Shown: positions 19,893 to 56,411 of the stretch, piece by piece
Numbering within the stretch: position 1 is the stretch's first letter
Layout: the number at the start of each line of letters is the position of its first letter
Assembly: GCA_047495785.1 (NCBI GenBank)
Contig: JBLDXI010000001.1
Coordinates: forward strand, 2,294,001-2,358,000
Source: Lepidodermella squamata
Taxonomy: Eukaryota; Animalia; Gastrotricha
Direction of reading: 5' to 3'
DNA length: 64,000 bases
Notes under the pieces: generated by a model
Databases searched by the model: none
What the model was told of the DNA's origin: nothing
The model's input: the letters and a program-made list of their open reading frames with translations, nothing else
Position numbers and translations under genes: made by a program

Positions 19893-21758
19893 TCATGCAG
19901 TACGACTACAATTCTTAGTGGGTAAGTCGTCCTCCTTCCGCCGATTTTTGCAGCCAATTTTCAATTGAACGAGCGGGCACTCAGGAGCGTACCGTTCGGC
20001 CGCCGACGTAACATCTGTCAAACCAACGCCTGTTTCCGGCATGAAAATCAGGCAAAACAAGAATTCAAGAGCAGCAACGGCAGCAAAAGGCAGGAAGGAA
20101 TATTGGTGGATTGTGATCTGCATGGCCGGGAAAATGAAGCTGCTGATGATGTTGCAAGACCAATTGGCGAAGAGTGACACGCTCATGCCCATTGGTCGAG
20201 CGTTTTGATCGAATAATTCAGCGGCGATGAAGCAAGGTATCGGCCCGGGTCCAGACGCGAAAAACAGGTGAAACAGAGCGAAACCCAAAATGCTCGCTTG
20301 GAAAACCTTTAAACAAATTTATAAAGTTTAGTGATTTGTCTTTGAAGATGTGAGAGAAAATAATATTACGTTATAGGTTAGAACGATGACCAGCAAAATT
20401 TGAGCCAGAGAAACACCGATCAGCCCGATGATCATCAATGGACGCCGACCAACTCGATCGATGATTATCGCATTGACGATGTTTCCAATAAGGTTCGCGA
20501 CTGATACGCCAAAATTCGCGAGTCCAGCCATGTCAGAAGGTAAACCAGCGGAGTAGAGCACATTTGCTGCGTAGAAGAAAACCGGAGCTAGACCGGTCAG
20601 TTGAGCGCAAATTTGCATATTCACGACAATAATTAAGGGCCACCATAGTGCGCGATTTTTGAATATAGTTTTGATTGAAACTAGTTCGATTTTTGCGTCA
20701 GCTGCTGATATTGCTTTTAGTTCGGTTAGCTCAGCTTCGACATCTTTCGCCGATCTTCCGCGAAGCCTTTTTAAAGCTGAAAATCAAGAGCTTGAAAAAT
20801 CAGATCGCAGGCATTGAATAGTTCCTATACCTTCTCTTGCTTGGTCTTCTTTGCCCTGATCGATTAAAGCTCGCGGGCTTTCGACGACAAAAAACAAGGC
20901 AGCTCCATCAATCAAATAAATGCCGAGCTCGAAGACTTGAAAAAATTAACAAAATTGATAAAATTAAAAAAAATTTGTATAATTAATTTTTAAAAATTTA
21001 AGAATTTGAAATAATTTTTTATTTACGGAATAAATATTGCCACGTCGACTCCTTTCCCAGCACAAAGCTGAGGCCCAGAATGTTCGATACGAGCAGGCCG
21101 AGGCTGATACCAATGCCGATGAAACTGCCCAGTATACCTCTCAGTTTGCCAGGTGCATGCTCTATAATTATCGAAGGCACGATCACCAGTGTGAAGCCAG
21201 CTTGAAATCCAAGTACGGTTCGTCCAATGTACAGTGGAATGTGGCTTTCAGTCCAGGGTGTTACAAACAAGATCACCGCACCAACGCACCCAATAGCAGA
21301 TCCCAAAATTAAAGAATTCCTCCTTTAAAATGTCGATTATAAATAGAAATTGTTGTGCAATCAATTATTAATTTGCAGTTCTCACTTTCCAATTTTGCTT
21401 GAAACTTTGACTGGAATCCAAGTTGATCCTATGATGCCGCCAATTAGATATAACGCAACTATAGCAGACCAGTTCGAACTAAGCTCAGCGCTTGACAAAA
21501 TCTGGCCACTTCTCGCAAATGACTGGTTGACGTAGTTGTTCATAACTACAAACGGGGCATTTATCACGCCTAATTACAAGGTAATTCTCAATAATTAACC
21601 CTGATAATTTTTCAAGAAATTTTTTTACCGAGGTTGTAGCCGAATAGGAACGAAGAGCCAAGAACGATTGAAAGATTGCAGTAGATCAAATAGAATGTCC
21701 AGCCACCACCTTTCTGATCCATGGGCACTGAAATAGCTGATTCACCGGTCCTTCCCAT
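19893..21758 (-). CDS. SLC2/GLUT-family transporter copy 2, multi-exon
   Basis: FLFGYNLG, VINAP, VESPR, AQLTG, DRVGRRPL, GPGPIP, ANW, MPET; same exon structure as copy 1. Confidence 0.9.
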
Positions 21759-22036
21759 TTGCCTGCAGATATTTGGAGGAAACAATATTTTTTACTTGTC
21801 TTATTTTTATTAAGGATTGATGGGGTTTTTTGTGAAGTAACTTTTTACCCGTCTCGCCTTCAAATTAAAATCCGCTCACACGTGATTATGATAACGGTGA
21901 AGAGGCGTGCTGGCGTAGACAGTTCATGCATATATACCTTTAGCACTGTTCCCTGGCCTCGAAAGACAAGAAAAAAATGTTTTAATCTTTAGTTGCAGCA
22001 CTTAGTTATTTACTTTAAAGAGCTAACATACCAAAA
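21759..22036. promoter_or_regulatory. probable bidirectional promoter between GLUT copy 2 and DDC
   Basis: 278 bp between divergent ATGs, with a TATA-like catatatacc near 21930. Confidence 0.55.
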
Positions 22037-23841
22037 ATGAACGCTGATGAGTTTCGCCAGCATGGCAAGGAGATGATTGATTTCGCGGCTGATTACCTGG
22101 AAAACATCAGGGAGAGGTTGATAAATATTGAATTAAATAATTAATTATTCCAAATTTATATTTGAAGACCCGTTTTTCCCAACGACCTGAAGCCGGGATT
22201 CTTGACTCCACAGTTGCCATCAGAAGCACCACAAGAACCGGAAAGTTTCGAAGCTGTGATGGAGGATATTAATCGAGTCATATTACCCGGAGTAACTCAT
22301 TGGCATTCTCCGAAGTAAGTTCAATTTAAAATTATTTCTCAATTATACTAACCGATTAATTTTTCTAAAAGGTTTTTCGCTTATTTTCCAACTGCCAACT
22401 CATATCCGGCGATCGTTGCTGATATTCTGTCAGATGCCATTGGCTGCATAGGATTTTCATGGGCCTCCTCGCCAAGCTGCACTGAGGTTCGTATTTTAAA
22501 TTATTTCAAAACCTAATTAAAATTAAATTTTTTAAATAAAATTAGCTAGAGACAGTTATGATGGACTGGTTGGCAAAAATGCTGCAACTTCCAGAGCATT
22601 TCCTGTTCAGTTCTGGCCAAAAAGGTGGTGGCATCATTCACGGAACAGCCAGTGAAGCGACATTCACAGCTCTTTTAGCTGCCCGAAGTAGAGCTATAGC
22701 CCAACAAAAGGAACTTCATCCCAATTCAACAGCGGGCAGCGTTCTCGATAAATTGGTCGCTTTCTGCTCAGACCAGGCTCATTCCAGTGTTGAACGAGCT
22801 GGTTTGATGGGCTGTATCCAAAATTTCGTCAAAGTCCCGAGTGACGACGAAGGATCGATGCGAGGTGATGCTCTAAAACAAGCGATTGAAACTGCGAAAG
22901 CTCAAGGTCAAATTCCGTTTTACGTTGTGGCAACGCTTGGCACTACTAGTACATGTGCTTTCGATTATTTATTGGAAATCGGCAGAATTGTCGCTGAGTT
23001 CAATGAAAAGAGCGAAGCGCCGATTTGGCTGCATGTTGATGCAGCTTATGCTGGTAGTGCATTCTGTTGTCCTGAATATCGGCACTACTTGAACGGCGTG
23101 GAATTCGCCGACTCTTTCAACTTTAACCCTCACAAATGGATGTTGGTCAACTTTGACTGCTCCGCCATGTGGTTCAAAGATGCCTCACAAGTGGTTAGTT
23201 GAGAATTTTTGAGCCTCTTTTTTTGTTACTGAATCTTTTGTTTTAAGGTGGACGCGTTCAATGTCGATCCGTTGTACTTGAAACACCAATTTCAAGGGCA
23301 ACAGCAAGTTCCGGACTATCGGCATTGGCAGATCCCTCTCGGGCGTAGATTCAGAGCTTTGAAGCTTTTCTTTGTCCTTCGATTGTTCGGAGTTCGAGGA
23401 ATTCAGGTTTCTCTTCTAAGCAATTCGTTATTGTTCATTTTATTTCTGTGATTTATAGGATTATATCAGAAAGCAGATCGGACTGGCTCATTTGTTTGAA
23501 GATAGGCTGAAATCCGACAAGCGATTTGAAGTAGCAGCAAATGTCACGATGGGGCTGGTTTGTTTTCGATTGATCAAAGTTGGCGATGGTGATGACATAA
23601 ACGAGCCATCTGAAGCTCTTTACAAGGCGATTTCGAACGATGGCCGAATTCACTTGGTTCCGACAAAAGTCAAGTAGACATTTTTTCAATGAAAAATAAT
23701 GAAAAATGTTCAAAAATGCTGTTTTTCAGGAGAAAATTCATGCTTAGACTGGCGATTTGTGCGGCAAAAACCTCAGAGCAAGACATAGAATTCGCGTGGA
23801 ACGTGATCAAAGAACTGGCCACTAATGTTCTGACAGGCTGA
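22037..23841 (+). CDS. DDC: aromatic L-amino acid (DOPA) decarboxylase, PLP-dependent group II
   Basis: [16 protein letters not shown]..., [49 protein letters not shown] (PLP Lys), [15 protein letters not shown]. Residues are DDC-type (G in PLGRR, F in AYFP, H in AHSS, loop Y) rather than HDC, TDC or aldehyde synthase. Confidence 0.95.
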
Positions 23842-24540
23842 AGCGTTTCTTCCCCAAAAACATGAAATATATTTGAGGCTAATATTTCCTTGTTAATTGA
23901 TCAACTAATTTGCATTAAATTACCGTATATCATTTTAACGGTTAGAAGCTGATTAATAAAAAGTGAGAATTCCCACCTCAAATTATCGAAAAGGCTTTAG
24001 CGAGTTTTAATTATCTATTTTTTGCTGCCATATGCCGTTACAGTGGAGCAGAGGTCACAGCACCCCAAGCTAGTCATAAGGTTATTCACAGTACACGCTG
24101 GATAACTATTATTACGTTACGTGAAAAAAAACTTGCCGCCGCACAACAAGCAGCGCGCGCTCCCACTTCAATTAATTGCCTTTCGCTTTTGGAACTCCCT
24201 CTAAATGGCAACATCAAACTCATCACTAATCCTCTCACGTCATCACACACGTGCCATGTGAAGATGAATCCACCTTAAAAATCCACCTTAACAAACTTGA
24301 GGTATTTTACACTTCAATTTTCGACAATTTGAAGTATTGGCTGAACTACGTAAAATTATCTCCTTCAAATTGCTTTTTGCAGCGAAAATCATTGAGGCCG
24401 CATGGCATTGGAACAAAAGATCAACAGCGAAAAGGATAAGAATTTTTGTTTATTATTTAAACTAAAATATTGCTAAAAATATTGAAATAATACTATACTA
24501 TATCCTCTATCTCAAAGATTATTTAGTTGGGCCCCATCGA

Positions 24541-26035
24541 TTAGAAATAGAGGACCGATTCGTTGTATAGAACAGGAGAATGGATCGATAGGTTCATAGT
24601 CGTTGCCGGTTCATTCGAGCTTTCTGTTCCTCCGACTACGTCTTCCCTAGCGAAGTTTTCTCGCACGTACCGGCGGAACTTGTGCTTCATATCTTCAATT
24701 GAATCGCTGACAAAGTAGACCGACTGATAATCAGCATCTTGGTACTTTTGAACAGCAACCTTTGAAGGTTCGAATTCTCGGATTTCAGGTTTGCCGGATA
24801 GCGCATGTTTCAACTCGCCGAATGCGGACAATAAGCCGGCGCCAAAGGCCTTGACATTGCCATCGTCGGCTTCATCTCGGCATAGACCGAATTCCACCGT
24901 AAACCAGTAGAGCTAAAAGATCAAATGATTTTTCAATTTTTTTCACAATTGAGCAAAATTTACCGTTGATAATTTCTCGATTTCCTCGTCTGATGCTCCG
25001 AGTGAAGCTATTCCGATTTCTTGCGAAAAATCTGCAAAGTCAGGATCGGCCAGCATTGGAACATGACCCAAAAGCTCGTGAATGCAATCTCTGGATGAAA
25101 AAATTCTTGAAAAAATTGATAAAAGAAGGCATAAAACTCACGGTTCAGGGCTGTGATGTGGCGACGATGGATGCCGAATATATTGGGTACACATGAAAAC
25201 GCGGTAGGCCAAGCTGTAGAGAAAGTGCCTAGACGACAGCAAACCAGAGATAGGCCGTAGTTGAAACCCGGTTTGCTCCTTCAAAAAGGTCGAAACATCT
25301 TCGAGCTGCGGAATGAAATCAGGCGAGTAGATTCCTCTCTCCTCCATTAGGTTGAAAACGCGGAGAAATCCGGAGTAAGCATGCGTCTTGTGCAGCTCTT
25401 TCAGCTTTAAATACACCGTAGACCAGGTCGATATCTCACCGGGAGTGAATTCAACTCGAGGAATCGGCGATCCACTGAAAGACCAATTTTTTGAAATTTT
25501 ACCGAATTAAGGTGGATTATTTACATTTTATAATTGTAGGCGATTTGAGCGATTGCATTTCTTCGGCCACGGTAATTACTGTCGTAGAATCCCTGAAATT
25601 TCCAAAATCATCATAATTAATTTAAACTAGAGCCTAAAAACTCACTGGATGACCAGAATCTGCAGTCGGGTCGAATTTTGTTATGCAATCGATACATTTA
25701 TCCAGCTCTGAAATGTCTTTAGGGTACCAATGCTTCTTTCCAGTGGAAATGTCTCCAATCAGTTCAACATGAGAATCGGTCAGAGAGTTCCTCAAAGCTT
25801 CCAGCAATTCTTGGCCCGAATCATTTTGTCTATCGATTTGAGTTTCGACCATAAAATCGCGCTTGCTATGGTCAAATTGGTTTTTCCGAATTTCAAGCCG
25901 CTCAATTTCGGCACCTTTCAGCCTTTCGATTGTGCTGTAGATACAACTGAGAGCTATCGATGGCTGCTCAATGCCTTTGATGAGGAAAACGCATCGGTCG
26001 CTTTCCGAATCGCTAGATGAGCTTCGCGACGACAT
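24541..26035 (-). CDS. TH: biopterin-dependent aromatic amino acid hydroxylase, tyrosine hydroxylase-like (TH1), 5 exons
   Basis: ACT-like N-terminus, TKFDP...[52 protein letters not shown]. Fe ligands H, H and E are intact. HSPEP, W-F-T-V-E and YQD are TH-type signatures. Confidence 0.88.
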
Positions 26036-26497
26036 TGCGTAAGAAAAATTTCACCAAATTTCCAGGATAAAATGTGAAGACCTGAGAATAAACGCGCCCG
26101 GTTATATTTGTCCGAGAAAGGCAGGCGCACGTGGGCGAAGTTCCTCGCGCACTTAATTAGTCGCTCGGTGAGTAGTTATAGGCCGGTGTTGCGTCAATTT
26201 TTCCGGAACAGCGGTGCGCCGGTCTACGAAGCCACGTTTGAAAAGACAGTTGGCGTCAAAAACAAAATTTTCGTGTTCACGCGCATCGGATTAATCTTTT
26301 TCCTATGATTAATTATTAAGAACTCGGTAGCGGCAACGGTAGTCAGCGTGGGGAAAAATGAACTCGAGAGTTCTGGACAAATGCATCTCTTAAAATAATT
26401 GCTGATTGCGTGCCAAGTTCGCGAGTGACGCATTGACCTCTCGATCTAAAAACTCAATAGAAAAAATATTTCATCAAAATTTCTTATCGTAATCGAA
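26036..26497. promoter_or_regulatory. probable bidirectional promoter between TH1 and the pseudo-hydroxylase
   Basis: 462 bp between divergent ATGs of two paralogues. Confidence 0.5.
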
Positions 26498-27815
26498 ATG
26501 CCTCGAAGAAAACTTGGTAACAGCGAGGTTGATTATTTTGCGCGTAGCCAATGTTCGTTTTTGCTCGAAGACGTCGACCAGCCAACGGCCGCCTTGAGTT
26601 TGATTTACGAAATTGTCGAAGCTGAAAACAACGCTCAAGTTCAGCACTTGGAGATACGAAAAAAACCATTCGATGAATGCACGCGGGATATTTTGGTCGA
26701 GGTGCTGGTTGACTCGTGCGGTTCAAGCTCAGCGAATTTCATTGCTAAAAGTTTAAAAAAGCGAATCGGATTGTCCAAGGTGACTCAAATTGAGAAAATG
26801 AGTTCGGGAGATGTCGAAAAGTTATGGTACCCGAAAACATTATCGGAGCTTGACAGATATTTCGAAGCCCAGAGTAACGAAGTTGTCGCTGATTCGGTCG
26901 AGTGGTGAGAAATTATCATAATTAAAGTAATATTATTCTAGATTTTTTCTAATTTTCTTCAGGGAACTGGCATATTCTGAGTCGAAACGAGCCACTAATG
27001 AGATGGCCAGTTCCAATTATTTGCGAGCAATGAGCAAATTCGAGGCTTCACAAATTTACTCCACAAATTGCGCACCAAAAATACGAGAAATTTCAAATTT
27101 TCTTAAAGGTGCGTCGAAAATTCTCATCGCCCAGAAAAATTTCATCAATATTTGTTTTTCAAAGGAATAACGACATTTCAAATCAGAATTGTTCGAGGGA
27201 AATTTCCGAAGCGGCAGTTTTTCTATTGTTTGGCATATCGCGTTTTTGTCATCAGCCAAAATTCTCCATTCAACGTTGGCGGGAAATCGTAAGATCCCAA
27301 ATTTGAAGGTATAAATCGGTCACATTTTTTTATTTTTCGATAATTTTACAGTCATCCGAGTCGCCAATTGCTCTACCAAGTGCCAATGCTAGCTGATAGC
27401 GATTTTGCTGAATTTTTGCAAGATATTGGCATAGCTTCGCTTGGAGCGACAGACTTCCAAATCGAACAGTTGTCAATGGTAAAAATCGACCGATTTTTCG
27501 ATCATGGCCAATTTTCTAACAATTTTCCAACCTCAGATTTATCGCTCCATAGCCGAACGTGGATTGATACGAGATGCGTTTTTCGACGGAGAAGTTAGAA
27601 TGCTCGGATCTGAACTTTTATCTGAATCTAAAATCGCAAAGCCCTTGTCGGCCGAACTGGTAACAACAATTCGAGAATTCGATCCATCATCGGCAGCTTG
27701 CCCCAGCACTGATTTGTTTGTTATCGATTCGATCGAAGTGGCGCGCCTGAAATTCCGCGATTTCGTACACAAACATTTCAACAATAATAATTTACTGAAC
27801 TGCGCTATTTATTGA
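26498..27815 (+). CDS. catalytically dead aromatic amino acid hydroxylase paralogue (pseudoenzyme), 5 exons, frame intact
   Basis: ACT domain homologous to TH1, [51 protein letters not shown] is replaced by HPSRQLLYQ. All GT-AG junctions join in frame. Confidence 0.8.
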
Positions 27816-28422
27816 CTAACCGATTTCGTTTCAATTTCATTCAATTTCATTTTTATCAATAAAATGTGCTGCTACCAGATAAGTTTTTTTCAAAACTGCC
27901 GCATGAAAAAATGAATTTTGAACTTTGGTCAGCGGACTTCTGAGTTTTAAACAAAACGGCTGCATCAATTATTAAGGTGTTTTTTCCATTGTTTCCAGAA
28001 AACTCTTTTAGCGATAATTAAAAGCAACGAGCAAAATAATCAAACCGAAAGGACAAAAATTGAACTCATTTTTTTCAATCACGTGTTGCCAGCGGTAGGT
28101 CACCAAGAGGCGTAATACTTTCATCAATTTTTGCGCAATTAAAATGATAATAAGACTGACTCACCGCCGTTCTTCGTTGTCTTAAAAGCGGCGCTGACGG
28201 TTTCAGCGCCGCGTGGTCACGAAAAAATTGAGAGTTTTTAATGATAAGAAATTACAAATCAAAACACCTCATTAAAAAAACGGCTATGCCGTCCTCCTTT
28301 TAGCGCGCTCGGTGGCGTGACGCCTTTCGTACCCGTGAGCAGCTTGAAACATTGTCTACACCCGTTCTAATACGCAGTTCAATTTTTTGACATAGCTTAA
28401 TCTGACGTAGAAGCATTTCAAA

Positions 28423-29052
28423 ATGGCGGATCACCAATTTTCTGTAAAAATGCTGACCCGAGATCGCCTCGATGAGGTTGTCGATGTACTGGCGAATTCA
28501 TTCATGCAGACTCACATTCCGACGATCCACCTTAAACAATTCACACCGGAAAAGTTTCCGATCTTCGTCCGCGACTTCATCGTTGAACCTTGCATCGATC
28601 AAAACGTTAGCATTTTCGTTGAGGACTCTGCTGGTAAAATGCTTGGCGTAGTTGTTTGCGAGAAGTGGCATATCGAGGAGAATCCTACTCTGCCTGATCA
28701 GGATCAAGAGATGTTCATATTGATGGGAGAACTCGATAAAATGTTGCCGGCTGAGATGGTTGCGGAGTCGGGAAAAGGGACAATTCTGCATGTCAACATG
28801 GTCGCTACTCGAGTTGGCGAGCAAGGCCGCGGGGTTGGGACTCTGCTGATAAAATCAATGGTCGAATTTGGGCTGAATAATGGGTTCAAATACGCCTTCA
28901 ACGATTGCACATCGGCTGAAATGCAACACATATTTTTGAACAAATTGGGGTTTACTAACGTTGGAGAAATCGTGTACGATACATTCAGCGAGAAACTCAA
29001 AGGCTGCCCTGGCAAAATTGTTCTAGCTGTCAAGAAATTGCTTCAAGATTAG
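28423..29052 (+). CDS. GNAT acetyltransferase resembling insect-type arylalkylamine/dopamine N-acetyltransferase, single exon
   Basis: V..VLANSF, C..QNVS...D..GKMLGVVV, acetyl-CoA motif QGRGVG.LL and DCTS..MQHIF..KLGF match the iAANAT-like layout. Confidence 0.75.
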   Translation: MADHQFSVKMLTRDRLDEVVDVLANSFMQTHIPTIHLKQFTPEKFPIFVRDFIVEPCIDQNVSIFVEDSAGKMLGVVVCEKWHIEENPTLPDQDQEMFILMGELDKMLPAEMVAESGKGTILHVNMVATRVGEQGRGVGTLLIKSMVEFGLNNGFKYAFNDCTSAEMQHIFLNKLGFTNVGEIVYDTFSEKLKGCPGKIVLAVKKLLQD

Positions 29053-29106
29053 GCTGTCGGAATCATGAGATGAAATAATTAACCTATGACGCCCACAGCA
29101 GGCATA

Positions 29107-30215
29107 CCGTATTTCTCGAAAATATACGACACACCTGTATATATCCCCGCTCCCTAATACAACCCGACGAAAAAATCGTTTGTTCATATTTAACCCAGGC
29201 CTCGAAATTGTACCACAGCTATTTTAATTTGGGCGAAGCATGCGTTGGAACAAAAGAAAAGCCTTATTAATGACGCATTATCGTAATCAGTGATTAGCTA
29301 TCGCGTAAGCAGCTTCGCAACGTCTGATCTTGGCACCATTCATAAGCCAGCAGAAAATGCCCATTCAGCATTCACTAGCTGAGACACAGAGTTTTATTTT
29401 AAAATTTTCATATCCTTCTTAATCGTTTTAACCTTCTGGAATCGATGATGGCTGGCTCTCCTGATCGTCTTCAAGATTCCGTCCAGGTGTCCGAAGAAGA
29501 CAAGCGAAAGCGGCACCGCAAGTATTCCCTCGCATACAAAATTCGCGTGGCTGATCATGCAAAAGCAATCTCAGCAAACGATGCCTCGAGAGTCTTCAAG
29601 GTCGATCGTCGATGCGTCAAGGAATGGCTACAACATCACCAACAGCTGCTGATTCTACAGTTCGCTGGCATGGAAAAGCGTCATCGTCTCCTTGGCGCCG
29701 GTCGACCGCTGGCCTACCCTAACCTCGATCAGGTTATGGAAGAATGGATAACCGAGCAACGCCTCGCCCGCCGTCCCGTCTCAAGGCGCAGCATTTTGCT
29801 GAAAGCAAAACAGCTCGATCCATTATTCAAAGGCAGCAACGGATGGCTCGATCGTTTCCTCAAACGGTACGATTGCTGGCCGAGAGCTACTGGCTTCGAA
29901 GATGGCATCAAACGACACGTTCGATCAAGTCATCAGCCTGGATGATTTCAACGATGACGAAAGTGAACCTGACTTTTTTTTTATTGATAATTGATTTTGT
30001 TGGTTGATCAAAAAATTGTTAACTTTTTCACTTTTTCACTGAATCGACAAATAAAACAATCTAAAAACGTCGTCTTAATACGAATTGCTCGCGGCTTTTT
30101 GTGATGATTCGCAATTAAACAGCACACCCGTATATATCCCCACTCCCTAATACAACCCGAATCAAAAATCATTTGTTCATAAATATAGCCCGCGGTAAAT
30201 TTTCGAGAAATACGG
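29107..30215 (+). mobile_element. internally deleted pogo/Tigger-like (Tc1-mariner superfamily) transposon
   Basis: TA duplications, TIR ccgtatttctcgaaaat / attttcgagaaatacgg, and subterminal direct repeats at ~29131-29188 and ~30124-30181. Confidence 0.85.
29445..29945 (+). CDS. truncated pogo-like transposase (HTH + CENP-B-type HTH only, no DDD catalytic domain)
   Basis: RKYSLAYK...AAR-like HTH..V.EW, GAGRP, L..W..EQR....VSR..I..KA, FKGS.GWL.RFLKR. Confidence 0.75.
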   Translation: MMAGSPDRLQDSVQVSEEDKRKRHRKYSLAYKIRVADHAKAISANDASRVFKVDRRCVKEWLQHHQQLLILQFAGMEKRHRLLGAGRPLAYPNLDQVMEEWITEQRLARRPVSRRSILLKAKQLDPLFKGSNGWLDRFLKRYDCWPRATGFEDGIKRHVRSSHQPG

Positions 30216-31677: not shown

Positions 31678-31853
31678 AACCTGATTTCACTGATCATCTC
31701 TGAATCTTTTTGTTTTCCTCGCTAACAAGTGTTAATAGCTAATCACCAGTCTCGTAGCATCGGGCATATTTCTTACTTCTGACAATGATATAGGAAATTG
31801 TACTTTCGAACCGAAAGTCTAAACTGCAACGGCGGTATCAGTGAAATCAGGTT
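31678..31853. repeat. 17-bp perfect inverted repeat, possible MITE
   Basis: aacctgatttcactgat / atcagtgaaatcaggtt. Confidence 0.5.
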
Positions 31854-42190: not shown

Positions 42191-43589
42191 CTACAACGCA
42201 ACGCGAGTTAAATCTGGACGATCGCGCTTGTTGAAATGTTTCCTGACGTACAGGAGAAATTGCTGCTTCATATCTTCGATTGAGTCGCTGGCAAAGTAGA
42301 GGGGCTGGTAATCGGCGTCCTGGTACTTTTGAATCGCAACAGATTCCGCGTTGAATTCCCGAATTTCAGGCTTCCCCGAAAGTGAATGTTCCAACTCGCC
42401 GTATGCGGACAACAAGCCCGCTCCAAAGGCTCTGATTTCTCCGCCATTAGCTTCATCACGGCACAAGCCGAATTCGACCGTGAACCAATAGAGCTGAGGA
42501 ACGAAATTGGAATGAGTATGTCTGTTAAAAACTGCTATTAGAAATTACCGTAGACAGCTTTTCGATGTCCTCATCTGAAGCTCCAAGCGATGCAAGACCA
42601 ATTTCCTGCGAAAAATCGGCGAAATCTGGATCGGCTAACATTGGAACGTGGCCGAGAAGCTCATGAATACAATCCCTGGAAAATCTTAAGCATTAAGGTT
42701 GCGGCTTAAGGCTGTGACAAAATTACGGCTCAGGGCTATGATGCGGCGATGATGGGTGCCGAATGTATTGCGTGCACATGAAAACGCGAAACGCGAGGCT
42801 GTAAAGGAAATGTCGCGACGAAAGCAGGCCAGATACTGGTCGTAGCTGGAACCCGGTTTTGCTCTCCAAGTAGTTCGAAGCGTCCTCCAGTTGTGGCACA
42901 AAATCCGGCGAATATATGCCCCGTTCCTCCATTTGGGTGAAAATTCGCACGAATCCTGAGTAGACATGAGTCGCATGAAGACTTTTCAGTTTCTTGTAAA
43001 CCGAAGACCAAGTCGCTACTTCATCGACTGTGAACAACACTTTTGGAATTGGATTCCCCCTAGAAGTTCAGAAATATTAATTATTCAAAATTTATTTTTA
43101 TGTAGTTATTACATTTTATAGTCGTAGGCTATCTGGGCTATGGCATTTCTCCTCGCTCGGTATTCACTGTCGTAGAATCCCTATAATTGATGTTTAGAAA
43201 AATGCAGGATAAACAATTGAGAATAATACCGGATGGCCGGAATCAGCAGTTGGGTCGAATTTTGTGATGCATTCGAGGCATTGATCAAGCTCAGATACAT
43301 TTTTGGGATACCATTGAGATTGATTCAGCAAAGTGTCTTCGATCGGATGAAAGGTTATCGCGCCAATATGTTTCTTGAAGAGTTCCGCCGATTCTTCCTT
43401 GAAATTATCGCCTATCAGCTCAACTTCGAATAGCAATTCGTGCAGGCCATTGGCTCCGAGCTGCTTTCGAATTTCGATTTTGATGATTTCAGCAAAGTTG
43501 CTCCTTTGAAATATGTCGAATAGGCGCTCGATCTCCAATATCGGCTGCCCGACATTTTTCATGGCAAAAGCGTGATAAGCAGGTGGCAT
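42191..43589 (-). CDS. TH: tyrosine hydroxylase-like TH2, 5 exons
   Basis: Same motifs and intron positions as TH1: [38 protein letters not shown] about 60 bp upstream. Confidence 0.88.
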
Positions 43590-44211
43590 TTGAAGAATTT
43601 CAAGAAATCTGATATTGCTATTTCGATGAGTTAACTCACCATGCTGCGCTTATTTATAGGCTAAAGAGCGGCGTGATACTAGATTTTATCGCAGAAAGTA
43701 ATTACCGGGTGCATCATTCTCCTGTCTTTAACTACGCACGAAAGTCTGGCCGAAGGCGTCGCCGCGATGGGGTTGATGCCAGGATAGGATAAAAAACCCA
43801 GAAGACAAACACGTTGCGCGTCGTCATCAACGCAATTAATTAACGCTGCGATAATTCAGACGACAGAAAAAACATCAGGCGCTCACCTTAATAATATGAC
43901 ATTTTAAATACAATGAATGAATTGTTTGAATTTGACGACTCGAGGGGGAAGTAAAGGAAAATATTAAAATTTAGGAATACAAGCACATTTATTCCGCTGA
44001 CTATTGCAACGCTCAAAAATTCGAATCGCTGATTTCAGTGAAATCGCATAATTCTGTAACATGATGTAGGATTATTTGGTTTGTTCCAACACAACAGCAC
44101 TGCTTTTTCATCCGGTCGGTTTTAAACCTTCTGCTCAAAAATGAGACCTGCAATATTATTTATTTTTAATGAATATCGCAAGGATGCGTTACTTATATAT
44201 GCCATGGAATG

Positions 44212-45840
44212 TTAAACGAAGGCTAAGTTTTGGGAGGCTGTACTGGGATATTCTCCCTCCGGCAGTTTATCAACTGGAAGTTTCTTGCCAGCCATTTTCA
44301 GTTGAACGATTGGCTGACCGGGTGCATAACGTTCGGCTGGCGCTTTCAAACCGTCGAAGCCATCCTCAGTCTCCGGCATGAAGAAAATACAAAAGGTCAA
44401 CTCCAAAGCAGCAACAGCGGCGAAAGGAAGATAGGAATACTGGCTCATATTGGCTTGCATAACAGGGAAAATGAAACTGCTGATTAGGTTGCATGTCCAG
44501 TTAGTGAACATGGCAACACTCATGCCCATCAGCCTTGCGTCTTGCCCAAAAAGCTCAGCAGCGGCAAAGCATGAAATCGGTCCTGGTCCAGACGCCAGAG
44601 ATATGTGAAATATTGCGAATCCCAAAATACTGGCTTGGAAAATCTGGAAAGTATGAAAATGTTAGCAAAAATGTGTACAATTTTTTCACGGGCTAACGTT
44701 GAACGTTAAAAACATAACAAGTAGAACTTGAGCCAATGTTATTCCGATCAAGCTGGTGATCTTCCGCGGCCTTCTACCGACACGGGCGATAATTATTGCG
44801 TTTATAATATTCCCCATAAGATTTGCACACATAGTCAGGTTGACAGTGATGACCAGAGGCCACCATAGTGAACGACTCTTGAAAACATTCCTCACAGAGA
44901 CAGGTTCAATTTTCGCCTCGGCTAAGGATTCGTCCTTCAGTTCAGCCATTTCTGCTAGTATTTCTTTATCAGAAGTGCCTCGCAGTTTTCTCAGAGCTTC
45001 CATTGCTAGGTCTTCTTTTAAAAGATCGATAAGAGCTCGAGGACTTCGACGACAAACAGCAAGGCGATGAAGTCCAAGAAATAGACAACCCCCTCGAAAA
45101 CTTGAAATTATAATGAATAACTACTGGAAAAATCTTTAATCGCGTTCTTTGACTTACGGACTATGGAACAAATGTTGCCTCCTTTCCCTGGACGAAACTG
45201 AGGCCGAGTATATTTGAGACAAGTATACCGAAGCTGACGCCGATGTCGATGAGACTTCCGAGTAGCCCCCTCAATTTATTAGGCGCGTGTTCAATGACAA
45301 GAGACAATGCAATAAAGAGTGCGAAACCGGCTAGAATCCTACGGCCAATGTATAGCGGAACACGGCTTCCAGTCCAGAGTGTCACATGTCACAAACATGA
45401 TCAATGAGCCGATAAAACCAACAGCAGCTGCCGCAACCAAGGATTTATTCCTGTAGATATTATAACTCAATTTGGTAACGAAAAAGCTCTCAGGTAGCTT
45501 ACTTTCCAATTAATACTGAAATATTGACAGGAAACCACGTGGAAGCGCTGCCCAGTTGTCATTCAATTCCGTTGGTGAAAGTAATTGACCCTTACGAACA
45601 ATTGACTGGTTGACGTAGTTATTCGATACTTCCTAAGGAGCGTTAATTACTCATTACCCCACATGGAAAAAAGATAAAAATTGTAAATGCTTCATCAATT
45701 TAAAAATAGAGTTTACCTAAATTGTAGTCAAACAGAAAAGAGGATCCTAGGACCACCGTCACGTTGCAAAACACCAGGTAGAAGGTCCAGGATTTCCGAT
45801 CTTCGATAACTGAATCACTCATAATCTCAGCAGATTTCAT
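44212..45840 (-). pseudogene. SLC2/GLUT-like copy 3, pseudogene
   Basis: Paralogue of copy 4 with a premature TAG at 45633-45635 (TAT in copy 4), a deletion of the ELTG...GVSV segment, a deletion in exon 2 and frameshifts. Confidence 0.85.
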
Positions 45841-46397
45841 AGCTTTCGACTTCAGAATATAGGCAATTTCATTTTTTTTACTTCAGGCGCCGAAATGTGG
45901 GCATGAATCTGCGCTTTCGGCGTCGCGAGATCGTCATCCCCAATTACGGCGAGGATGAATCCTGGTTGTACGTGACGGTTTACGGCACCTCACAAACGAT
46001 TTTTGGGCTGCAAGCGGGTGTTTTGGTAGACACGAGAAGCGTCAAGATAATCTAGGGTTAACTAGTTAGAAGATGTAGCTCATACATGTCAACTTGAACT
46101 CATGTTATAAAAAAGTAATTATACGATGCCTCGACGCTGCCGCGACTAGCACGAATTGATGAGAACAATTATTTGTAGCCGCCAGTTTTCCAATTACTGA
46201 TGATTTGCTCATTACACTCATTTGAGACGACATTTTTTGGTGAGCAATTGTCCAGAGGTTAACGTATCAATTTTCATCGCAAAACATTTTTTCTCCTCAT
46301 AAACTTGGCTGATTTTTGTGTCTTTAAGGCAAGCCCATCTAGATGGCGTATGATGGAATATGGAGGGCTGAATGACAATTCCATGTGACGAGATATA

Positions 46398-46513
46398 CAG
46401 GGCGTTCGCGTAATAATACTCTGCTAAAAATAGCTTTGCTACTTTTTGCATTCATTTGAGCTTTTTTGTAGCTATTTTTAGCTCACCCAGAGTATTATTA
46501 CGCGAACGCCCTG
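46398..46513. mobile_element. Tc1/mariner-type MITE
   Basis: Perfect TIR cagggcgttcgcgtaataatactctg with TA on both sides; absent from the paralogous site near 54350. Confidence 0.85.
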
Positions 46514-46654
46514 TATATGAGACTTATTTGAGATTTATTTCACACAGAAAAAATAATAAATAAAGAGCCATTCCTATTTGATACTCGCATTTTAGAGATT
46601 TGATGTCAAAATGAAAAATTGCGGACTAATTGTTTACAGAAAATGTCCGCTCTA

Positions 46655-46745
46655 GAACCGCCGTCACGTTGCAAAACACCAAGTATAGAAATTCCCTTCT
46701 TCCATCACAGAATATGTCATAATCTCAACAGGTTTAATGGGTTCG
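46655..46745 (-). pseudogene. relic of GLUT exon 1 with upstream promoter homology
   Basis: ccgtcacgttgcaaaacacc...gtcataatctc matches GLUT3/4 exon 1. Confidence 0.55.
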
Positions 46746-47824
46746 AATAATAAGAACTCTGGAATAAATAAAATTGACCGACACTCGTTAATTGTTCTCA
46801 TCAACTTTGATTACTTTAGGCGCTAAATCATGGGCAATTTCCATCGACAAAAAAGCGCACCGGCTTTCGGCACGTGAGATGGCGTAGCGGGTTTATCAAT
46901 GGTTCCCGGTTATACGTGAAGCGTGATGCGTCAGGTGAAGTTTGCGGTACCTCAGGGCACGCCACAGCGCTGTTGTGTAGATAATCTATGGCTATCTAAT
47001 GAGCATAAATATGAACTCGTAGTAAAATACATTCTGCAAAAAGTACCTAATCATGTTTATCGACAAAATTCTTGTTATACTAGTTTTTCCCATTGATTAC
47101 TCATAATCATAAAATATTATCATACCTTCATAAAATAATAATATTGGCTTTTCAAAAAGAGTTTATCGAGTCAAGTATCTCCAGAGGTTCTGCACTCCAA
47201 TTTTCGGGGAAATTTTGCACACAAAATATTTCCCAATTTCAGATCGATGGCTCTATTCTTAAGATGCTGAAATAAATGGCATAAAATAATACGCAAAATA
47301 ATGAAGGACGCCTATTTACACAGAAAAAGCGGTGACAGGTTTATGGTAACTGTTTATTATTGACTGAAATGCATCTCGCATACAGGTACTCTGTATGTAA
47401 CATGAACTTCATTCGCTAAGCAGACAGCAGACAGTCTTGGTGGAACTCACGACGCAACGGCTGTTGCAACGTAAACTCATAAAACTACTGGGTGGACCTG
47501 GATATTGTCGACAATGCTCGATTCCTTAGTTCTTAGTTGATAGTGCACCGTTGATGCGCGAGACGCGTTAGACTGGCTCGAATATCTTTCTTTACAGCGT
47601 ATTAGTAAGAAGATCAGCCACTAGGACCGAATCGGATCAACCCTTTGTTAGGAAACAATTCGCTGAGATCATATCGATGATCATGATCGAGACATTTGCT
47701 AGCTAGAGGTGCGACCATTTCAATAGCTCGAAAATTCATGATGACTTAGACGCTGTCAGACTTGGTCAAACAATCCACCGATTTCTCTATTCATAAGCTA
47801 TCCAATTTGGTAAATACCATCCGG

Positions 47825-48325
47825 CAGCGTTGGAAACAGGTCCGGTCGACCGACGCCGTTCCCGGTCCGTTCCCGTTCCAGGTCCGGTATGGGTCTCAAA
47901 AAACGCCACCGGTAGACCGGGAAAAATTGAATTTACAACTTAGCAGGCTGGGCGCGGGAAAAATCCACAGAAAACTAGATTTTCCAGTTGTGCTCATTAT
48001 TCTGACTGTGAGCATTAGTGCAGCAGTGCAATGTTTTGCAAACTTATTGGACTGTTGGGCTGGTATGGGGTTTCCGAACTATTATGCTGACCAAGATCGA
48101 AAGGCCCCGTGAGTCTTAGAAGGCTCCTAACCTAGATTGATCTGATTTTTTAGGTGAGTTAAGAAATTTTATGCGTTTGGTATCATGTTTTCGCTATTTT
48201 CATGCGATTTGAAAAATGCAGTTCTAAAACCGGTAGAACGGGCCGTTCCCGGCCCGGTCCAGTTTGACATCCACCGTTCGCAGGTCCGGTACCGGTCTGC
48301 AAAACCTTACCTGTTTCCAACACTG
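47825..48325. mobile_element. non-autonomous hAT element
   Basis: 8-bp TSD ccatccgg on both sides, TIR cag(c/t)gttggaaacaggt, internal ccggt subterminal repeats. Confidence 0.88.
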
Positions 48326-48601
48326 CCATCCGGCAAAGTAAGATTAAATTGCAAAATTGTCCTAAATTTTTTTCAAAAATGGCTGATTTTTGGCGCGCAG
48401 ACTTCTAAAGCGTAATCGGGTCTTTTTGGTCGCCATGTGACATCAACTGCGTTCCAAAAATACGAGCTCTGATTTGAACAATTTGGTGGCGCCCACCGCA
48501 AAACAAACATTCCCGCTTCGGCTGACGCCTCGGAAATAAAAATTTAGTTTGTCTGCTTATTGCCTCCAAACAGTTCAATAGGTAAGAATTTTCTTTCAAC
48601 C

Positions 48602-48967
48602 ATGCGTTACGCAGTCACCTTCCTTTTCGTTGCCGCAAGCATTTTTTGGTCGGCATCAGCCGGCGGTAAGGATTGACGATCCTATATTATGTTCCACGCT
48701 GTCATACTTTAAATGAATTTCACAGTATTTTTCAGACGAACTCAGAGCTGTTTCAATGCACAGACAATTGAAGGCAGCAGCAACATCATAGAAATGCTCC
48801 CATTTTCGAATACTCTTCAATGCGAGCAAACTTGCTTGAACTCAGCAGACTGTGGCGGATACGTTTCCACGGATACTAAATGCTACCTGTTGAGCTATTG
48901 CGACACCAACAATCACAGGAGTGCGCCCCTCAGCCAGGGTCATTACCAAAAATATGACCATAATTAA
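48602..48967 (+). CDS. small secreted PAN/apple-like Cys-rich protein copy A, 2 exons
   Basis: Signal MRYAVTFLFVAASIFWSASAG|, then C...QCEQTCLNSADCGGY....KCYL...C. Confidence 0.7.
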
Positions 48968-49479
48968 CAGCGTAATATTTGCCTGTTTTCTGATAATTTG
49001 TGAAAGTTGACGTTTCATGGTTAGTCAAACTCTGTTCATTTTATTCTTCTTAAACTGAAAAATAAACTGAAAAAATGTAGCGAACCATATGCCACGTTGT
49101 GAATTCTCTCTAGAAAAATGTGTCATCTACTCTATAACATCGATAGATATCAATAGATAGCTATAAGTAAATAAAACAGGCTTTCGTTCAATAGAAATTG
49201 TGTTTACTTACAGCACCAGCAGCTCGTTCTGGCACTGACGCTTTTTGAAAGCGACGGTAGGATTGTAGGCATCAGAGATATGGCGGAAATAGATCCACGC
49301 ACTAACAAACGACGCATTCATATCATTTTCAGTTATTAGTAAAAAATCAAGAAAAATCTGTCAGCTTAAGCTTGCTTCGCTCGCGGGTGTCTCGTTTCAT
49401 GAAGTTGTATAACGAGAATCTCTGATAAAGTGACGTCAGTTTATGGGTGCTTGGTACAATTGATTTTCCCTTGTCCCTT

Positions 49480-49600
49480 GTGCAGAATCAACGATTTCTG
49501 CGGTCGTTTTCCAGTTGATCTTTTCCAATCCGGTAATTCTTGCTTATATACTTCGGGTAAAATCTTCATCTTCCGACAGTTTTCCCTGTTTTGAACATGT
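49480..49600 (-). pseudogene. degenerate 5' fragment of the calpain gene
   Basis: agaatcaacgatttctg.ggtcgttt and aaatcttcatcttcc..agttt.ccctgttt.gaaca match 41170-41300. Confidence 0.7.
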
Positions 49601-49972
49601 GGTGATTGAGACGGCATCCAGCGAACGCCAACAATCTTTCACCGTATCTTTTCCATTTAAAAATTATTCGCATCGGCTATTAAATTCCTAATCTGAATTT
49701 TTTAATTATGATTGTTTTTCAGATGGTGAGGTCGCCCTCTATGTTACAGCAGCATATTATGAAAGCTGTAAAAAAACCGACAGTACGGTACATGTATATT
49801 TTAGGGATCCCTTATAAGATTCCTGATTGTTAAAAACACACCCAATAAGAAGCATGTGTATTTGATTTAGCAAAGACAAACAATAACTATATGAAAGAAA
49901 TTGCGATAATAATCTTTCACGGGTATGTATGGATAAGTTATAAGAAACCAATAAAGCTGTCATAATTCTCCT

Positions 49973-51371
49973 CTACAAAGCAACGCGAGTTAAATCTGGA
50001 CGATCGCGCTTGTTGAAATGTTTCCTGACGTACAGGAGAAATTGCTGCTTCATATCTTCGATTGAGTCGCTGGCAAAGTAGAGGGGCTGGTAATCGGCGT
50101 CCTGGTACTTTTGAATCGCAACAGATTCCGCGTTGAATTCCCGAATTTCAGGCTTCCCCGAAAGTGAATGTTCCAACTCGCCGTATGCGGACAACAAGCC
50201 CGCTCCAAAGGCTCTGATTTCTCCGCCATTAGCTTCATCACGGCACAAGCCGAATTCGACCGTGAACCAATAGAGCTGAGGAACGAAATTGGAATGAGTA
50301 TGTCTGTTAAAAACTGCTATTAGAAATTACCGTAGACAGCTTTTCGATGTCCTCATCTGAAGCTCCAAGCGATGCAAGACCAATTTCCTGCGAAAAATCG
50401 GCGAAATCTGGATCGGCTAACATTGGAACGTGGCCGAGAAGCTCATGAATACAATCCCTGGAAAATCTTAAGCATTAATGTTGCGGCTTAAGGCTGTGAC
50501 AAAATTACGGCTCAGGGCTATGATGCGGCGATGATGGGTGCCGAATGTATTGCGTGCACATGAAAACGCGAAACGCGAGGCTGTAAAGGAAATGTCGCGA
50601 CGAAAGCAGGCCAGATACTGGTCGTAGCTGGAACCCGGTTTTGCTCTCCAAGTAGTTCGAAGCGTCCTCCAGTTGTGGCACAAAATCCGGCGAATATATG
50701 CCCCGTTCCTCCATTTGGGTGAAAATTCGCACGAATCCTGAGTAGACATGAGTCGCATGAAGACTTTTCAGTTTCTTGTAAACCGAAGACCAAGTCGCTA
50801 CTTCATCGACTGTGAACAACACTTTTGGAATTGGATTCCCCCTAGAAGTTCAGAAATATTAATTATTCAAAATTTATTTTTATGTAGTTATTACATTTTA
50901 TAGTCGTAGGCTATCTGGGCTATGGCATTTCTCCTCGCTCGGTATTCACTGTCGTAGAATCCCTATAATTGATGTTTAGAAAAATGCAGGATAAACAATT
51001 GAGAATAATACCGGATGGCCGGAATCAGCAGTTGGGTCGAATTTTGTGATGCATTCGAGGCATTGATCAAGCTCAGATACATTTTTGGGATACCATTGAG
51101 ATTGATTCAGCAAAGTGTCTTCGATCGGATGAAAGGTTATCGCGCCAATATGTTTCTTGAAGAGTTCCGCCGATTCTTCCTTGAAATTATCGCCTATCAG
51201 CTCAACTTCGAATAGCAATTCGTGCAGGCCATTGGCTCCGAGCTGCTTTCGAATTTCGATTTTGATGATTTCAGCAAAGTTGCTCCTTTGAAATATGTCG
51301 AATAGGCGCTCGATCTCCAATATTGGTTGCCCAACATTTTTCATGGCAAAAGCGTGATAAGCAGGTGGCAT
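49973..51371 (-). CDS. TH: tyrosine hydroxylase-like TH3 (protein apparently identical to TH2)
   Basis: Near-identical to 42191-43589 at an offset of 7782 bp. Confidence 0.88.
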
Positions 51372-52052
51372 TTGAAGAATTTCAAGAAATCTGATATTGC
51401 TATTTCGATGAGTTAACTCACCATGCTGCGCTTATTTATAGGCTAAAGAGCGGCGTGATACTAGATTTTATCGCAGAAAGTAATTACCGGGTGCATCATT
51501 CTCCTGTCTTTAACTACGCACGAAAGTCTGGCCGAAGGCGTCGCCGCGACGGGGTCGATGCCATGATAGACGCATGAAAAACCAAAAATATTGGAAGGTA
51601 GCGCGACAAGCACGTCGCGCGCTGACATCAATGCAATTATATCACGCCGCGATTATTCAGGCGACAGAAAAAATGAGGCGCTCACCTTATAATTATGACA
51701 TTTTAATTATCATAGATGATTGAAAAACTCCATTTAATCCTTGTTTGAAGACTCGAGGGGAAAGCATATGAAATAAATGAACGTTCAGGAATGCAAGCAC
51801 AATTATTCCGCTGACTATTGCAATGAAAGTTCGAATCACTGATTTCTGTGGAAATTGCATAATCCTGTAAAATGATTAGGGATTATTTGGTTTGTTACAA
51901 CACAGCAGCACTGCTTTTTCATTCGGGTGGCTTTCAACCTTCTACTTGACAAATGAGACCTGAATTATCTTTTATTTTCCATGTAAATATCGTAATGTAT
52001 GCGTAATATTTGCAATGGAAAGTCATTTGAATGCAGAATATTAGAAGATATT

Positions 52053-53775
52053 TCAAGGATATTCTTCCTCCGGTAATTTATCAGTAACTCGAGATTTCTT
52101 GCAAGCCATTTTCAGCTGCACGATTGGCTGACCGGGTGCATACCGTTCGGCTGGCGTTTTCGAACCACTTAAGCCATCCCCCGTCTCCGGCATGAAGAAG
52201 AGGCAAAAGCACAGCTCGAAGGCAGCAACAGCGGCGAAAGGAAGAAATGAATACTGGCTCATACTGGCTTGCATAACAGGGAAAATGAAACTGCTGATTA
52301 TGTTGCAGGTCCAGCTCGTGAACATTGCAACACTCATGCCCATCAGCCTTGCGTCTTGCCCAAAAAGCTCAGCAGCGGCAAAGCATGAAATCGGACCGGG
52401 TCCAGACGCCAGGGATATGTGAAATATAGCGAATCCCAAAATACTGGCTTGGAAGATCTGGAAAGTATGAAAATGTTAGCAAAAATGTGTACAATTTTTT
52501 CACGGGCTAACGTTGAACGTTAAAAAGATAACTAGCAGAACTTGGGCCAATGTTATTCCGATCAAACCAGTGATCACTAGCGGCCTTCTACCGACTCGGT
52601 CGATAATTATAGCGTTTATAATATTTCCCAAAAGATTTGCGACCGAAACGCCCAGATTTGCCAAACCAGCCATCTCTGAGCTCAAACCAGCCGAGCTGAT
52701 AACATTAGCTGCGTAGAAGAAAACAGGAGCCATTCCGGTAAGTTCTGCACACATAGTCAGGTTGACGGTGATGATAAGAGGCCACCATAATGAACGACTT
52801 TTGAAAACGTTCCTCACAGAGACAGGTTCGATTTTCGCCTCGGCTGTTGATTCGTCCTTCAATTCAGCTATTTCTGCTAGTATTTCTTTTTCAGAAGCGC
52901 CTCGCAGTTTTTTCAGAGCTTCGATTGCAAGATCTTCTTTTCCAAGATCGACAAGAGCTCGAGGGCTTTCGACAACAAAGAGCAAGGCGGTGAAGTCCAA
53001 GAAATAGATAACCACCTCGAAAACTTGAAATATTTACAGATACATTTTGCACAAATAAAAATCGCTGACTTACGAAACAAATATTGCCACGTAGTCTCTT
53101 TTCCAAGGACGAAGCTGAGGCCGAGTATGTTGGAAACAAGTAGACCCAGACTGGCACCGATGCCGATAAGACTTCCAAGAAGTCCCCTCAACTTATCCGG
53201 CGCGTGTTCGATGACAAGAGACGGGCCAATAACGAGCGCAAAACCGGCTTGAACTCCCAATATCGTACGACCAATGTAAAGCGGAACATGGCTGCCAGTC
53301 CAAGGTGTCACAAACATGATCGAAGCGCCAATAGAGCCGACAGCAGCTGCTGCAGCCAAAGATTTCTTCCTGGAGATGTAACGTAAGTCAATTTGGTAAC
53401 GATAAAAATGTTTTAACGTAGCTTACTTCCCAATCAAAGCTGAAATTTTGACGGGAAACCACGTGGAAGCGATAATTCCACCGATTAAATAGAGCGAGAC
53501 GATCGCGGACCAGTTAGCGTTAAGTTCTTCCGGTGTTGTTAATTGACCGTTACGAACAAAAGACTGGTTGACGTAGTCGTTCAATACTTCATAAGGAGCG
53601 TTAATTACCCCTGATGGGAAAAAATTACATTTTTCATACAAAAAAAGAAAGAAAAAAGCAGTTCACCTAAATTGTAGCCGAACAGAAAAGAGGATCCAAG
53701 CACCACTGTCACGTTGCAAAAGACCAGGTAGAAGGTCCAGGATTTCCGTTCTTCGATAACAGAATGCTTCATCAT
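52053..53775 (-). CDS. SLC2/GLUT-family transporter copy 4 (intact)
   Basis: FLFGYNLG, VINAP, VESPR, AELTG, DRVGRRPL, GPGP and MPET motifs in frame. Confidence 0.88.
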
Positions 53776-56275: not shown

Positions 56276-56411
56276 CCGCAATTGCAAACATAATATTTGC
56301 CTTCTTTTTGTAACTTGAAACTTTTTGTAAGTTGACTGTTAATGACTAATCCAACTCTGTTCATATTATTCATCGAACTGGAAATATAACGAACATGACT
56401 GCCACGTCGTG

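Follow-up and report, generated by a model that had tools for sequence, protein, structure and literature searches.

Genes of the locus

We analysed a window of 64,000 nucleotides from the gastrotrich Lepidodermella squamata (assembly GCA_047495785.1, contig JBLDXI010000001.1, positions 2,294,001 to 2,358,000), in which genes for a tyrosine hydroxylase (TH), an aromatic amino acid decarboxylase (DDC) and an amine N-acetyltransferase of the GNAT family lie side by side, an arrangement that may represent a selected neighbourhood for the conversion of tyrosine into dopamine with an acetyltransferase linked to it. The window is eukaryotic in character, with a gene every 2-3 kb, introns of about 50 nt, acceptors of the TTTCAG type and a GC content of about 41%. 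Its core, at 19.9-29.1 kb, comprises five genes for which spliced models were obtained: GLUTb, DDC, TH1, a TH paralogue that lacks the iron ligands (the dead paralogue) and GNAT. GLUTb (19893-21758, minus strand) encodes an SLC2/GLUT-type transporter of 511 aa in six exons, three of which matched Sugar_tr (2.6e-21, 1.5e-12 and 1.1e-14), and it diverges head-to-head from DDC (22037-23841, plus strand; seven exons, 491 aa, intact), the two start codons being 278 bp apart. DDC and TH1 (24541-26035, minus strand; five exons, 429 aa, iron ligands intact) are placed tail-to-tail with a spacing of 699 bp, TH1 and the dead paralogue (26498-27815, plus strand; an open spliced reading frame of about 351-354 aa) are head-to-head with a spacing of 462 bp, and GNAT (28423-29052, plus strand; a single intronless open reading frame of 209 aa) starts 607 bp past the dead paralogue and 2.4 kb beyond TH1. 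TH1, DDC and GNAT are all contained within 22037-29052, a span of 7 kb, with the third pathway step assigned by family only. The first-pass annotation had placed an SLC2 gene head-to-head with DDC, a TH gene head-to-head with a dead paralogue, and a GNAT gene within about 9 kb, and Pfam matches and spliced models located every one of them there.

Two more TH genes, TH2 (42191-43589, minus strand; five exons, 396 aa) and TH3 (49973-51371, minus strand; 396 aa, with a protein identical to that of TH2), are present at 42-54 kb, each preceded on its own strand by an SLC2 gene. The two transporter genes concerned are GLUTc (44212-45882, minus strand), a decayed SLC2 gene and probable pseudogene with a disrupted N-terminal half, and GLUTd (52053-53775, minus strand; five exons, 501 aa, intact), which lies upstream of TH3. 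Two TH+GLUT modules had been proposed for this part of the window; both hydroxylase genes and one intact transporter gene were found, but the other transporter gene is degenerate. A further GLUT gene had been noted at 11-13 kb, and an intact SLC2 gene with no TH partner, GLUTa (11218-12991, minus strand; six exons and 503 aa in the spliced model), was located at that position.

Hydroxylases and decarboxylase

The subtypes of the TH and DDC proteins were assigned by contrasting bit scores against solved structures, using exon-sized queries and no tree. Exons of TH1 matched Biopterin_H (PF00351) at 4.5e-39 and 2.9e-27. Exon 3 of TH1 scored 142 bits against human TH, compared with 123 against TPH1 and 120 against PAH, and exon 5 scored 103, 75 and 77 bits, respectively; exon 3 of TH2/3 scored 134 bits against TH and 113 against TPH/PAH. 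Identification of the hydroxylases as TPH or PAH was rejected on the basis of these scores, which were higher for TH in both TH1 and TH2/3. In the spliced models, HELLGH and the Glu of FTVEFGL, which make up the 2-His-1-carboxylate iron site, are kept in TH1, TH2 and TH3, as is YQDADYQ, in which the Asp of the YQDxxYQ loop (Asp425) is of the TH type. The proposal that the rate-limiting enzyme has been amplified agrees with these data, since TH has been locally multiplied into three genes with iron ligands, but TH2 and TH3 amount to one sequence in two copies.

Beyond the catalytic core the hydroxylases depart from the human enzyme. The alignment of TH1 to human TH ends at chain residue 287 of 343, after which the tail of TH1 is unrelated, and TH2 and TH3 stop 13 aa past the catalytic core. 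No further exon of TH1 was found, the RNA contigs described below stopping just past its stop codon and leaving the next 600 bp uncovered. The dead paralogue is collinear with TH1 at 35-42% identity in tblastn comparisons, with HELLGH changed to RQLLYQ, and its listed differences from other haplotypes comprise five synonymous and four non-synonymous changes. Its N-terminal regulatory-type domain has been kept, with 39% identity to the one in TH1, so the protein could conceivably act as a regulatory pseudo-enzyme.

The decarboxylase matched Pyridoxal_deC (PF00282) at 6.5e-82 and keeps the pyridoxal phosphate-binding lysine in NFNPHKW. Against solved structures it scored 281 bits with pig DDC, 274 with fly DDC and 269 with human AADC, followed by HDC (233), insect DHPAA synthase (204) and plant TyDC (at most 172). 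In addition, the model retains the His in DQAHSS, the Gly in PLGRRF and the Tyr in DPLYLKH, residues that separate DDC from HDC and from the aldehyde synthases. Identification as an HDC or an aldehyde synthase was rejected because the DDC scores were the highest and these marker residues were present. Among 5.8 billion proteins, those closest to a 214-aa exon of DDC were 61-62% identical and were named AADCs.

The acetyltransferase

The Pfam match of GNAT was weak, and when 1.84 billion representatives were searched exhaustively with HMMER, the best relative had 30% identity (E 1.6e-16). When the single sequence was searched against the PDB, the Paramecium bursaria chlorella virus (PBCV-1) protein A654L was matched at 8e-9 and Aedes aaNAT2 at an E value of 0.02. 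A profile of the GNAT family matched over the full length A654L (6e-34), Aedes aaNAT2 (3e-27), Drosophila Dat (1e-23, residues 6-211) and the C-terminal domain of Ebony (3e-17). The AlphaFold model of GNAT had a pLDDT (predicted local distance difference test) of 94.6, and the best folds found by Foldseek, with template modelling scores of 0.76-0.81, were A654L, the Drosophila dopamine N-acetyltransferase and Aedes aaNAT2; the Tribolium AANAT was also matched. The acetyl-CoA loop, QGRGVG, is present.

The description of this protein as AANAT-like was borne out as regards the fold family, which is that of A654L and the insect AANATs, but it did not extend to ancestry or to key residues: GNAT belongs to a clade outside the animal AANATs, and both Glu47 and Ser186 of Dat are replaced. 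A phylogeny had been proposed as a check, and the tree and the labels of the relatives gave a negative result for orthology with the animal AANATs, with GNAT sharing instead a clade, supported at 95%, with genes that lie on giant-virus-like contigs. Those contigs whose members could be placed are dense and intron-less and carry DNA polymerase B, RNA polymerase pieces, an Evr1/Alr oxidase or an ornithine/arginine decarboxylase, and the C-terminal signature KGCPGK.VLA is common to the clade. The top 123 labelled relatives were environmental, protist or viral, the labels of the tree being cluster names that are mostly unnamed and metagenomic, and a scan of viral contigs revealed a single locus of a relative on an IMG/VR contig. 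One relative (P0024), on a giant-virus-like contig of 6.6 kb from GCA_041443065.1, adjoins an ornithine/arginine decarboxylase gene, as in the polyamine genes of chloroviruses.

The EP motif of the family aligns to D46-E47-P48 of Dat, whereas GNAT reads His31-Ile32 followed by P. Because GNAT lacks the catalytic Glu of Dat, N-acetyldopamine is therefore a presumptive product. Among the 15 listed differences between GNAT and other haplotypes, 14 are synonymous and one is non-synonymous, and the gene is under purifying selection. A recent foreign origin was rejected, as the GC content and the GC content at third codon positions (GC3) of GNAT match those of its neighbours and are host-like; an old transfer from a virus or a protist is possible, its basis being no more than the 30% identity to the closest relative. 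GNAT is thus predicted to be a working amine acetyltransferase.

Transporter genes and duplication history

The best solved matches of the SLC2 proteins were GLUT7, GLUT3, GLUT1 and GLUT4, and no resemblance to amine carriers was found among the solved-structure matches. The intact proteins, GLUTa, GLUTb and GLUTd, are about 500 aa long, with GLUTa being 61-67% identical to the other two, while in GLUTc a transmembrane segment is cut by a 33-aa deletion and the N-terminal part is broken. TH1 and TH2 are 65% identical, with a non-synonymous divergence (dN) of 0.26 and a saturated synonymous divergence (dS), and GLUTb and GLUTd are 70% identical with a dN of 0.21, values that fit one old duplication of a TH+SLC2 unit.

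A later tandem copy has a period of about 7.8 kb. The tracts at 42300-43755 and 50082-51537, which contain TH2 and TH3, are 99-100% identical over exons, introns and about 170 bp upstream and have sharp edges, whereas their flanks are only 65-90% identical. The two genes have no non-synonymous differences and 15 synonymous differences per 1,000 synonymous sites, and gene conversion that keeps the two TH genes identical is the best explanation of this pattern. Traces of a third, partial TH+SLC2 unit were observed beyond 54 kb, consisting of a relic of an SLC2 first exon (56263-56538, minus strand) and a small Cys-rich open reading frame duplicated at 48713-48964 and 56000-56272 (plus strand).

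The first-pass annotation had regarded the SLC2 genes as dedicated transporters of the pathway. This view was not sustained: the proteins are homologues of GLUT-type hexose carriers, and duplication of a single TH+SLC2 unit accounts for their presence next to TH. Since the pairing follows from duplication, one partner has decayed and nothing ties these proteins to amines, the SLC2 genes were most likely carried along by the duplication rather than serving as pathway transporters.

Other features of the window lie around these genes. Between two of the SLC2 genes is a divergent gene for a Cys-loop channel of the cation type (16031-17354, plus strand), the weak best matches of which were nicotinic and 5-HT3 subunits, and beyond the distal half is a class-C G-protein-coupled receptor-like gene with ANF_receptor and 7tm_3 domains (59144-62096, plus strand). 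Directly after GNAT (28972-29350), the word depth of the DNA run X1 rises to 2,700-4,200 from a level of about 100, and several loose ends occur there; this high-copy repeat adjoins an open reading frame with a Tc5/pogo transposase DNA-binding domain (29445-29945). Rfam and tRNA scans of the window gave no match.

Transcription

Contigs of RNA and DNA runs were compared with the part of the window between 23.4 and 29.35 kb. Run X2, which dates from 2015, is labelled as probable RNA and carries a different organism label, behaves as the transcriptome of a related organism. Its contigs cover DDC, TH1, the dead paralogue and GNAT, with zero depth in the intergenic bins, and their joints match all four introns of TH1 (24912/24964, 25090/25142, 25474/25525 and 25591/25645), intron 6 of DDC (23673/23730) and the first intron of the dead paralogue (26903/26962), for which additional exon ends coincide with loose ends at 27109 and 27478. 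A 603-nt contig covers GNAT with a word depth of 148, higher than that of any other contig in the region. DDC, TH1, the dead paralogue and GNAT are transcribed in the organism of X2. Taken with the Pfam matches and spliced models, the X2 contigs uphold the central observation of the first-pass annotation, that three non-homologous enzyme classes acting at consecutive steps, the third by family, are adjacent, intact and transcribed.

Shared upstream motif

We compared k-mers over four upstream regions, those of GLUTb/DDC, TH1/dead paralogue, GNAT and TH2. The 8-mer CTTAATAA occurs four times in the whole 64-kb window, once in each of these pathway-gene upstream regions, and quartets of random AT-rich regions of equal sizes shared such an 8-mer in 4% of trials (empirical p ~0.04). 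The copy in the divergent promoter region of GLUTb and DDC reads CCTTAATAAa (21806-21815, minus strand) and that between TH1 and the dead paralogue reads tCTTAATAAT (26312-26321, minus strand). The exact 10-mer CCTTAATAAT is found twice, upstream of GNAT and of TH2, and in each case AAAAAACAYC, a 10-mer that the window contains three times, stands before it. The resulting composite elements are AAAAAACACC plus CCTTAATAAT at 27968-27985 (minus strand), about 440 bp upstream of the GNAT start, and AAAAAACATC followed at a short distance by CCTTAATAAT at 43867-43895 (plus strand), about 300 bp upstream of the TH2 start. An origin of the shared motif from a transposon or repeat was rejected, as the local similarity ends after 12-16 nt. 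The motif may be taken as a lead towards co-regulation.

Search for the linkage in other organisms

An exact look-up of GNAT returned no record, and a word-indexed search gave no match. Neither TH nor GNAT neighbours were present in the four contexts of DDC homologues that were inspected, which belong to distant organisms. A scan of Joint Genome Institute (JGI) metagenomes with a DDC exon yielded mostly uninterrupted matches of 44-48% on large contigs, which are probably bacterial, and a search with a TH exon yielded four short fragments. No description of a TH-DDC-N-acetyltransferase cluster was found in the literature.

In several contigs of distant eukaryotes (L007:8539-13553, L008, L009 and L010:10001-13223), a DDC-type gene lies 1-2 kb from a gene for GTP cyclohydrolase I (GCH1), the enzyme of the first step towards tetrahydrobiopterin, the cofactor of the aromatic amino acid hydroxylases. 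The order COG7-PP2C-DDC-GCH1 is kept in two different organisms, which provides another case of adjoining amine-pathway genes.

Interpretation

We give about an even chance to the interpretation that the locus is a selected, probably co-regulated neighbourhood for the route from tyrosine through DOPA to dopamine, with a linked amine acetyltransferase; of this, we infer the co-regulation, the substrate of GNAT and the tissue. According to the proposed scheme, three TH-type hydroxylases, TH1 and the identical TH2 and TH3, would turn tyrosine into L-DOPA, the single DDC-type decarboxylase beside TH1 would make dopamine, and the linked GNAT would N-acetylate an amine, for which dopamine is the most economical candidate; the acetylation may either end a signal or yield an N-acetyl-catecholamine. 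As for the history of the locus, an old TH+SLC2 duplication would have given rise to two modules, now with 65-70% protein identity, and a later tandem copy may have followed, the TH part of which would have been kept identical by gene conversion, while one TH copy appears to have lost catalysis and one SLC2 copy to have decayed. The tight linkage and the divergent promoters would probably have been retained through co-regulation.

Several observations weigh against such a neighbourhood. About 12 kb of unrelated genes (29.4-41.4 kb) split the locus, including a Tc5/pogo fragment, two open reading frames with von Willebrand factor A (VWA) domains, an M13 (neprilysin-type) peptidase and a calpain with EF hands. 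In the tree of 117 relatives, GNAT is placed with genes on giant-virus-like contigs in a clade of 14 members with 95% support in the Shimodaira-Hasegawa-like approximate likelihood ratio test (SH-aLRT), and its nearest relatives, which sit on such contigs, are only about 30% identical. The catalytic Glu, kept in 33 of 40 family members and in Dat (Glu47), is His31 in GNAT, Met167 replaces Ser186 of Dat and Thr163 replaces Ser182; moreover, A654L, a solved member of the fold family, acetylates polyamines (PMC7019647). TH1, TH2 and TH3 have no C-terminal tetramerisation helix of the kind found in canonical TH and therefore may not be the main neuronal TH of the animal. The evidence from the upstream motif is marginal (p ~0.04) and post hoc, and the depth of the RNA contigs is about 150 for GNAT against 5-24 for TH1, such depths being poor measures and bulk RNA being unable to show expression in the same cell. 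Finally, no relative with usable contigs was available in the protein or contig collections. A possible but somewhat doubtful alternative is linkage without shared function, in which a tandemly duplicating TH+SLC2 array, DDC and an unrelated polyamine-type acetyltransferase would have become neighbours by chance in a genome dense in genes, each gene acting in a context of its own. It is in keeping with the grouping of GNAT with relatives on giant-virus-like contigs, with the missing catalytic Glu, with the hexose-carrier homology of the SLC2 proteins and with the unrelated genes that interrupt the locus, and where there is a gene every 2-3 kb, neighbours are easily over-read. On the other hand, a triple of TH, DDC and such an acetyltransferase within 7 kb would be expected by chance roughly 1e-5 times, a rough estimate that assumes, generously and without a count from the genome, eight TH, six AADC and 20 such GNAT genes in about 110 Mb; the gap between TH1 and DDC is only 699 bp; and a short upstream motif is shared.

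The first-pass annotation had favoured a cluster in the manner of plants and fungi, devoted to bulk, non-neuronal production of an N-acyl-dopamine (a pigment, hardener, glue or defence compound) with the SLC2 proteins as its transporters, which we consider unlikely. Three TH copies with intact iron ligands, two of them kept identical, look like dosage, the copies have neither the tetramerisation helix nor the long regulatory N termini that characterise neuronal TH, the GNAT contig is the deepest in the RNA run, and each TH copy has an SLC2 neighbour. However, the SLC2 proteins match GLUT7, GLUT3 and GLUT1 and not the amine carriers of SLC18, SLC6 or SLC22, one of the SLC2 partners has decayed next to a TH gene that was kept, and the pairing is explained by duplication of one unit. 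We would also regard as rather unlikely a more elaborate scenario, in which the last enzyme of a TH/DDC/N-acetyltransferase cluster would have been captured horizontally from a giant-virus or protist lineage, re-tooled for arylalkylamines by the change from Glu to His, brought under a shared TAAT-type element and copied within the genome, for the production of a non-neuronal N-acetyl-catecholamine. It is improbable that the TH2/TH3 pair is an artefact of assembly, with one gene written twice or two haplotypes placed in tandem, in which case the amplification of TH would be smaller. A stretch of 1.45 kb, introns included, that is 99-100% identical and ends abruptly might be expected of such an artefact, and the sample is heterozygous, the X1 contigs differing from the window by 1-2%. 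Nevertheless, identity between the flanking SLC2 copies is no more than 65-90% and one of them has decayed, and therefore two distinct TH+SLC2 units exist; gene conversion is consistent with both the synonymous-only differences between TH2 and TH3 and the slight divergence at the edges of the tract.

If the linkage is functional, the locus would offer a compact and testable case of a co-regulated metabolic neighbourhood in an animal, perhaps an instance in which monoamine metabolism recruited a foreign acetyltransferase, and natural TH variants without the tetramerisation domain, accompanied by a transcribed dead TH paralogue as a potential regulator. If it is not, the locus would serve as a warning that pathway-like neighbourhoods in gene-dense, tandem-duplicating genomes need expression and enzymological data before they are labelled as clusters.

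Comparison with known systems

The insect route for tanning and amine inactivation, in which TH (pale), DDC and AANAT1/Dat (speck) take part, draws on the same three classes of enzyme, acting in the same order; the DDC described here scores nearly equally against the fly and pig enzymes, and GNAT shares the fold of Dat and aaNAT2. The genes for TH, DDC and the N-acetyltransferase are unlinked in vertebrates, and we know of no cuticle-tanning biology in this animal. They are likewise unlinked in Drosophila, where speck/AANAT1 is located at 60C (PMC7466976). The insect system therefore differs from the present locus, in which the three genes lie within 7 kb and GNAT is not an orthologue of the insect AANATs and lacks the residue corresponding to Glu47.

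By sequence and fold, the best match of GNAT is A654L of PBCV-1 with its giant-virus kin, and the genes are alike in being intronless. A654L and these kin differ in being only about 30% identical to GNAT and in having the EP catalytic motif, which is HI(P) in GNAT. Unlike its viral kin, GNAT sits in an animal chromosome, has a host-like composition and is under purifying selection.

In the cholinergic ChAT/VAChT locus, an enzyme is paired with its own vesicular transporter under shared regulation, whereas the transporters at the present locus are homologues of hexose carriers. To our knowledge, it is rare in animals for the genes of non-homologous enzymes of a single pathway to be clustered, and the Drosophila Ddc cluster contains neither TH nor AANAT. 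That cluster, at 37C, is an animal precedent for the grouping of related amine-metabolism genes (PMC2120908), and the terpenoid clusters of octocorals and sponges are cases in which non-homologous pathway enzymes are clustered in animal genomes (PMC11784711, PMC12685057, PMC9992776). The terpenoid clusters have demonstrated products, whereas the present locus consists of enzymes of primary and neurotransmitter metabolism, known here from sequence and bulk transcripts.

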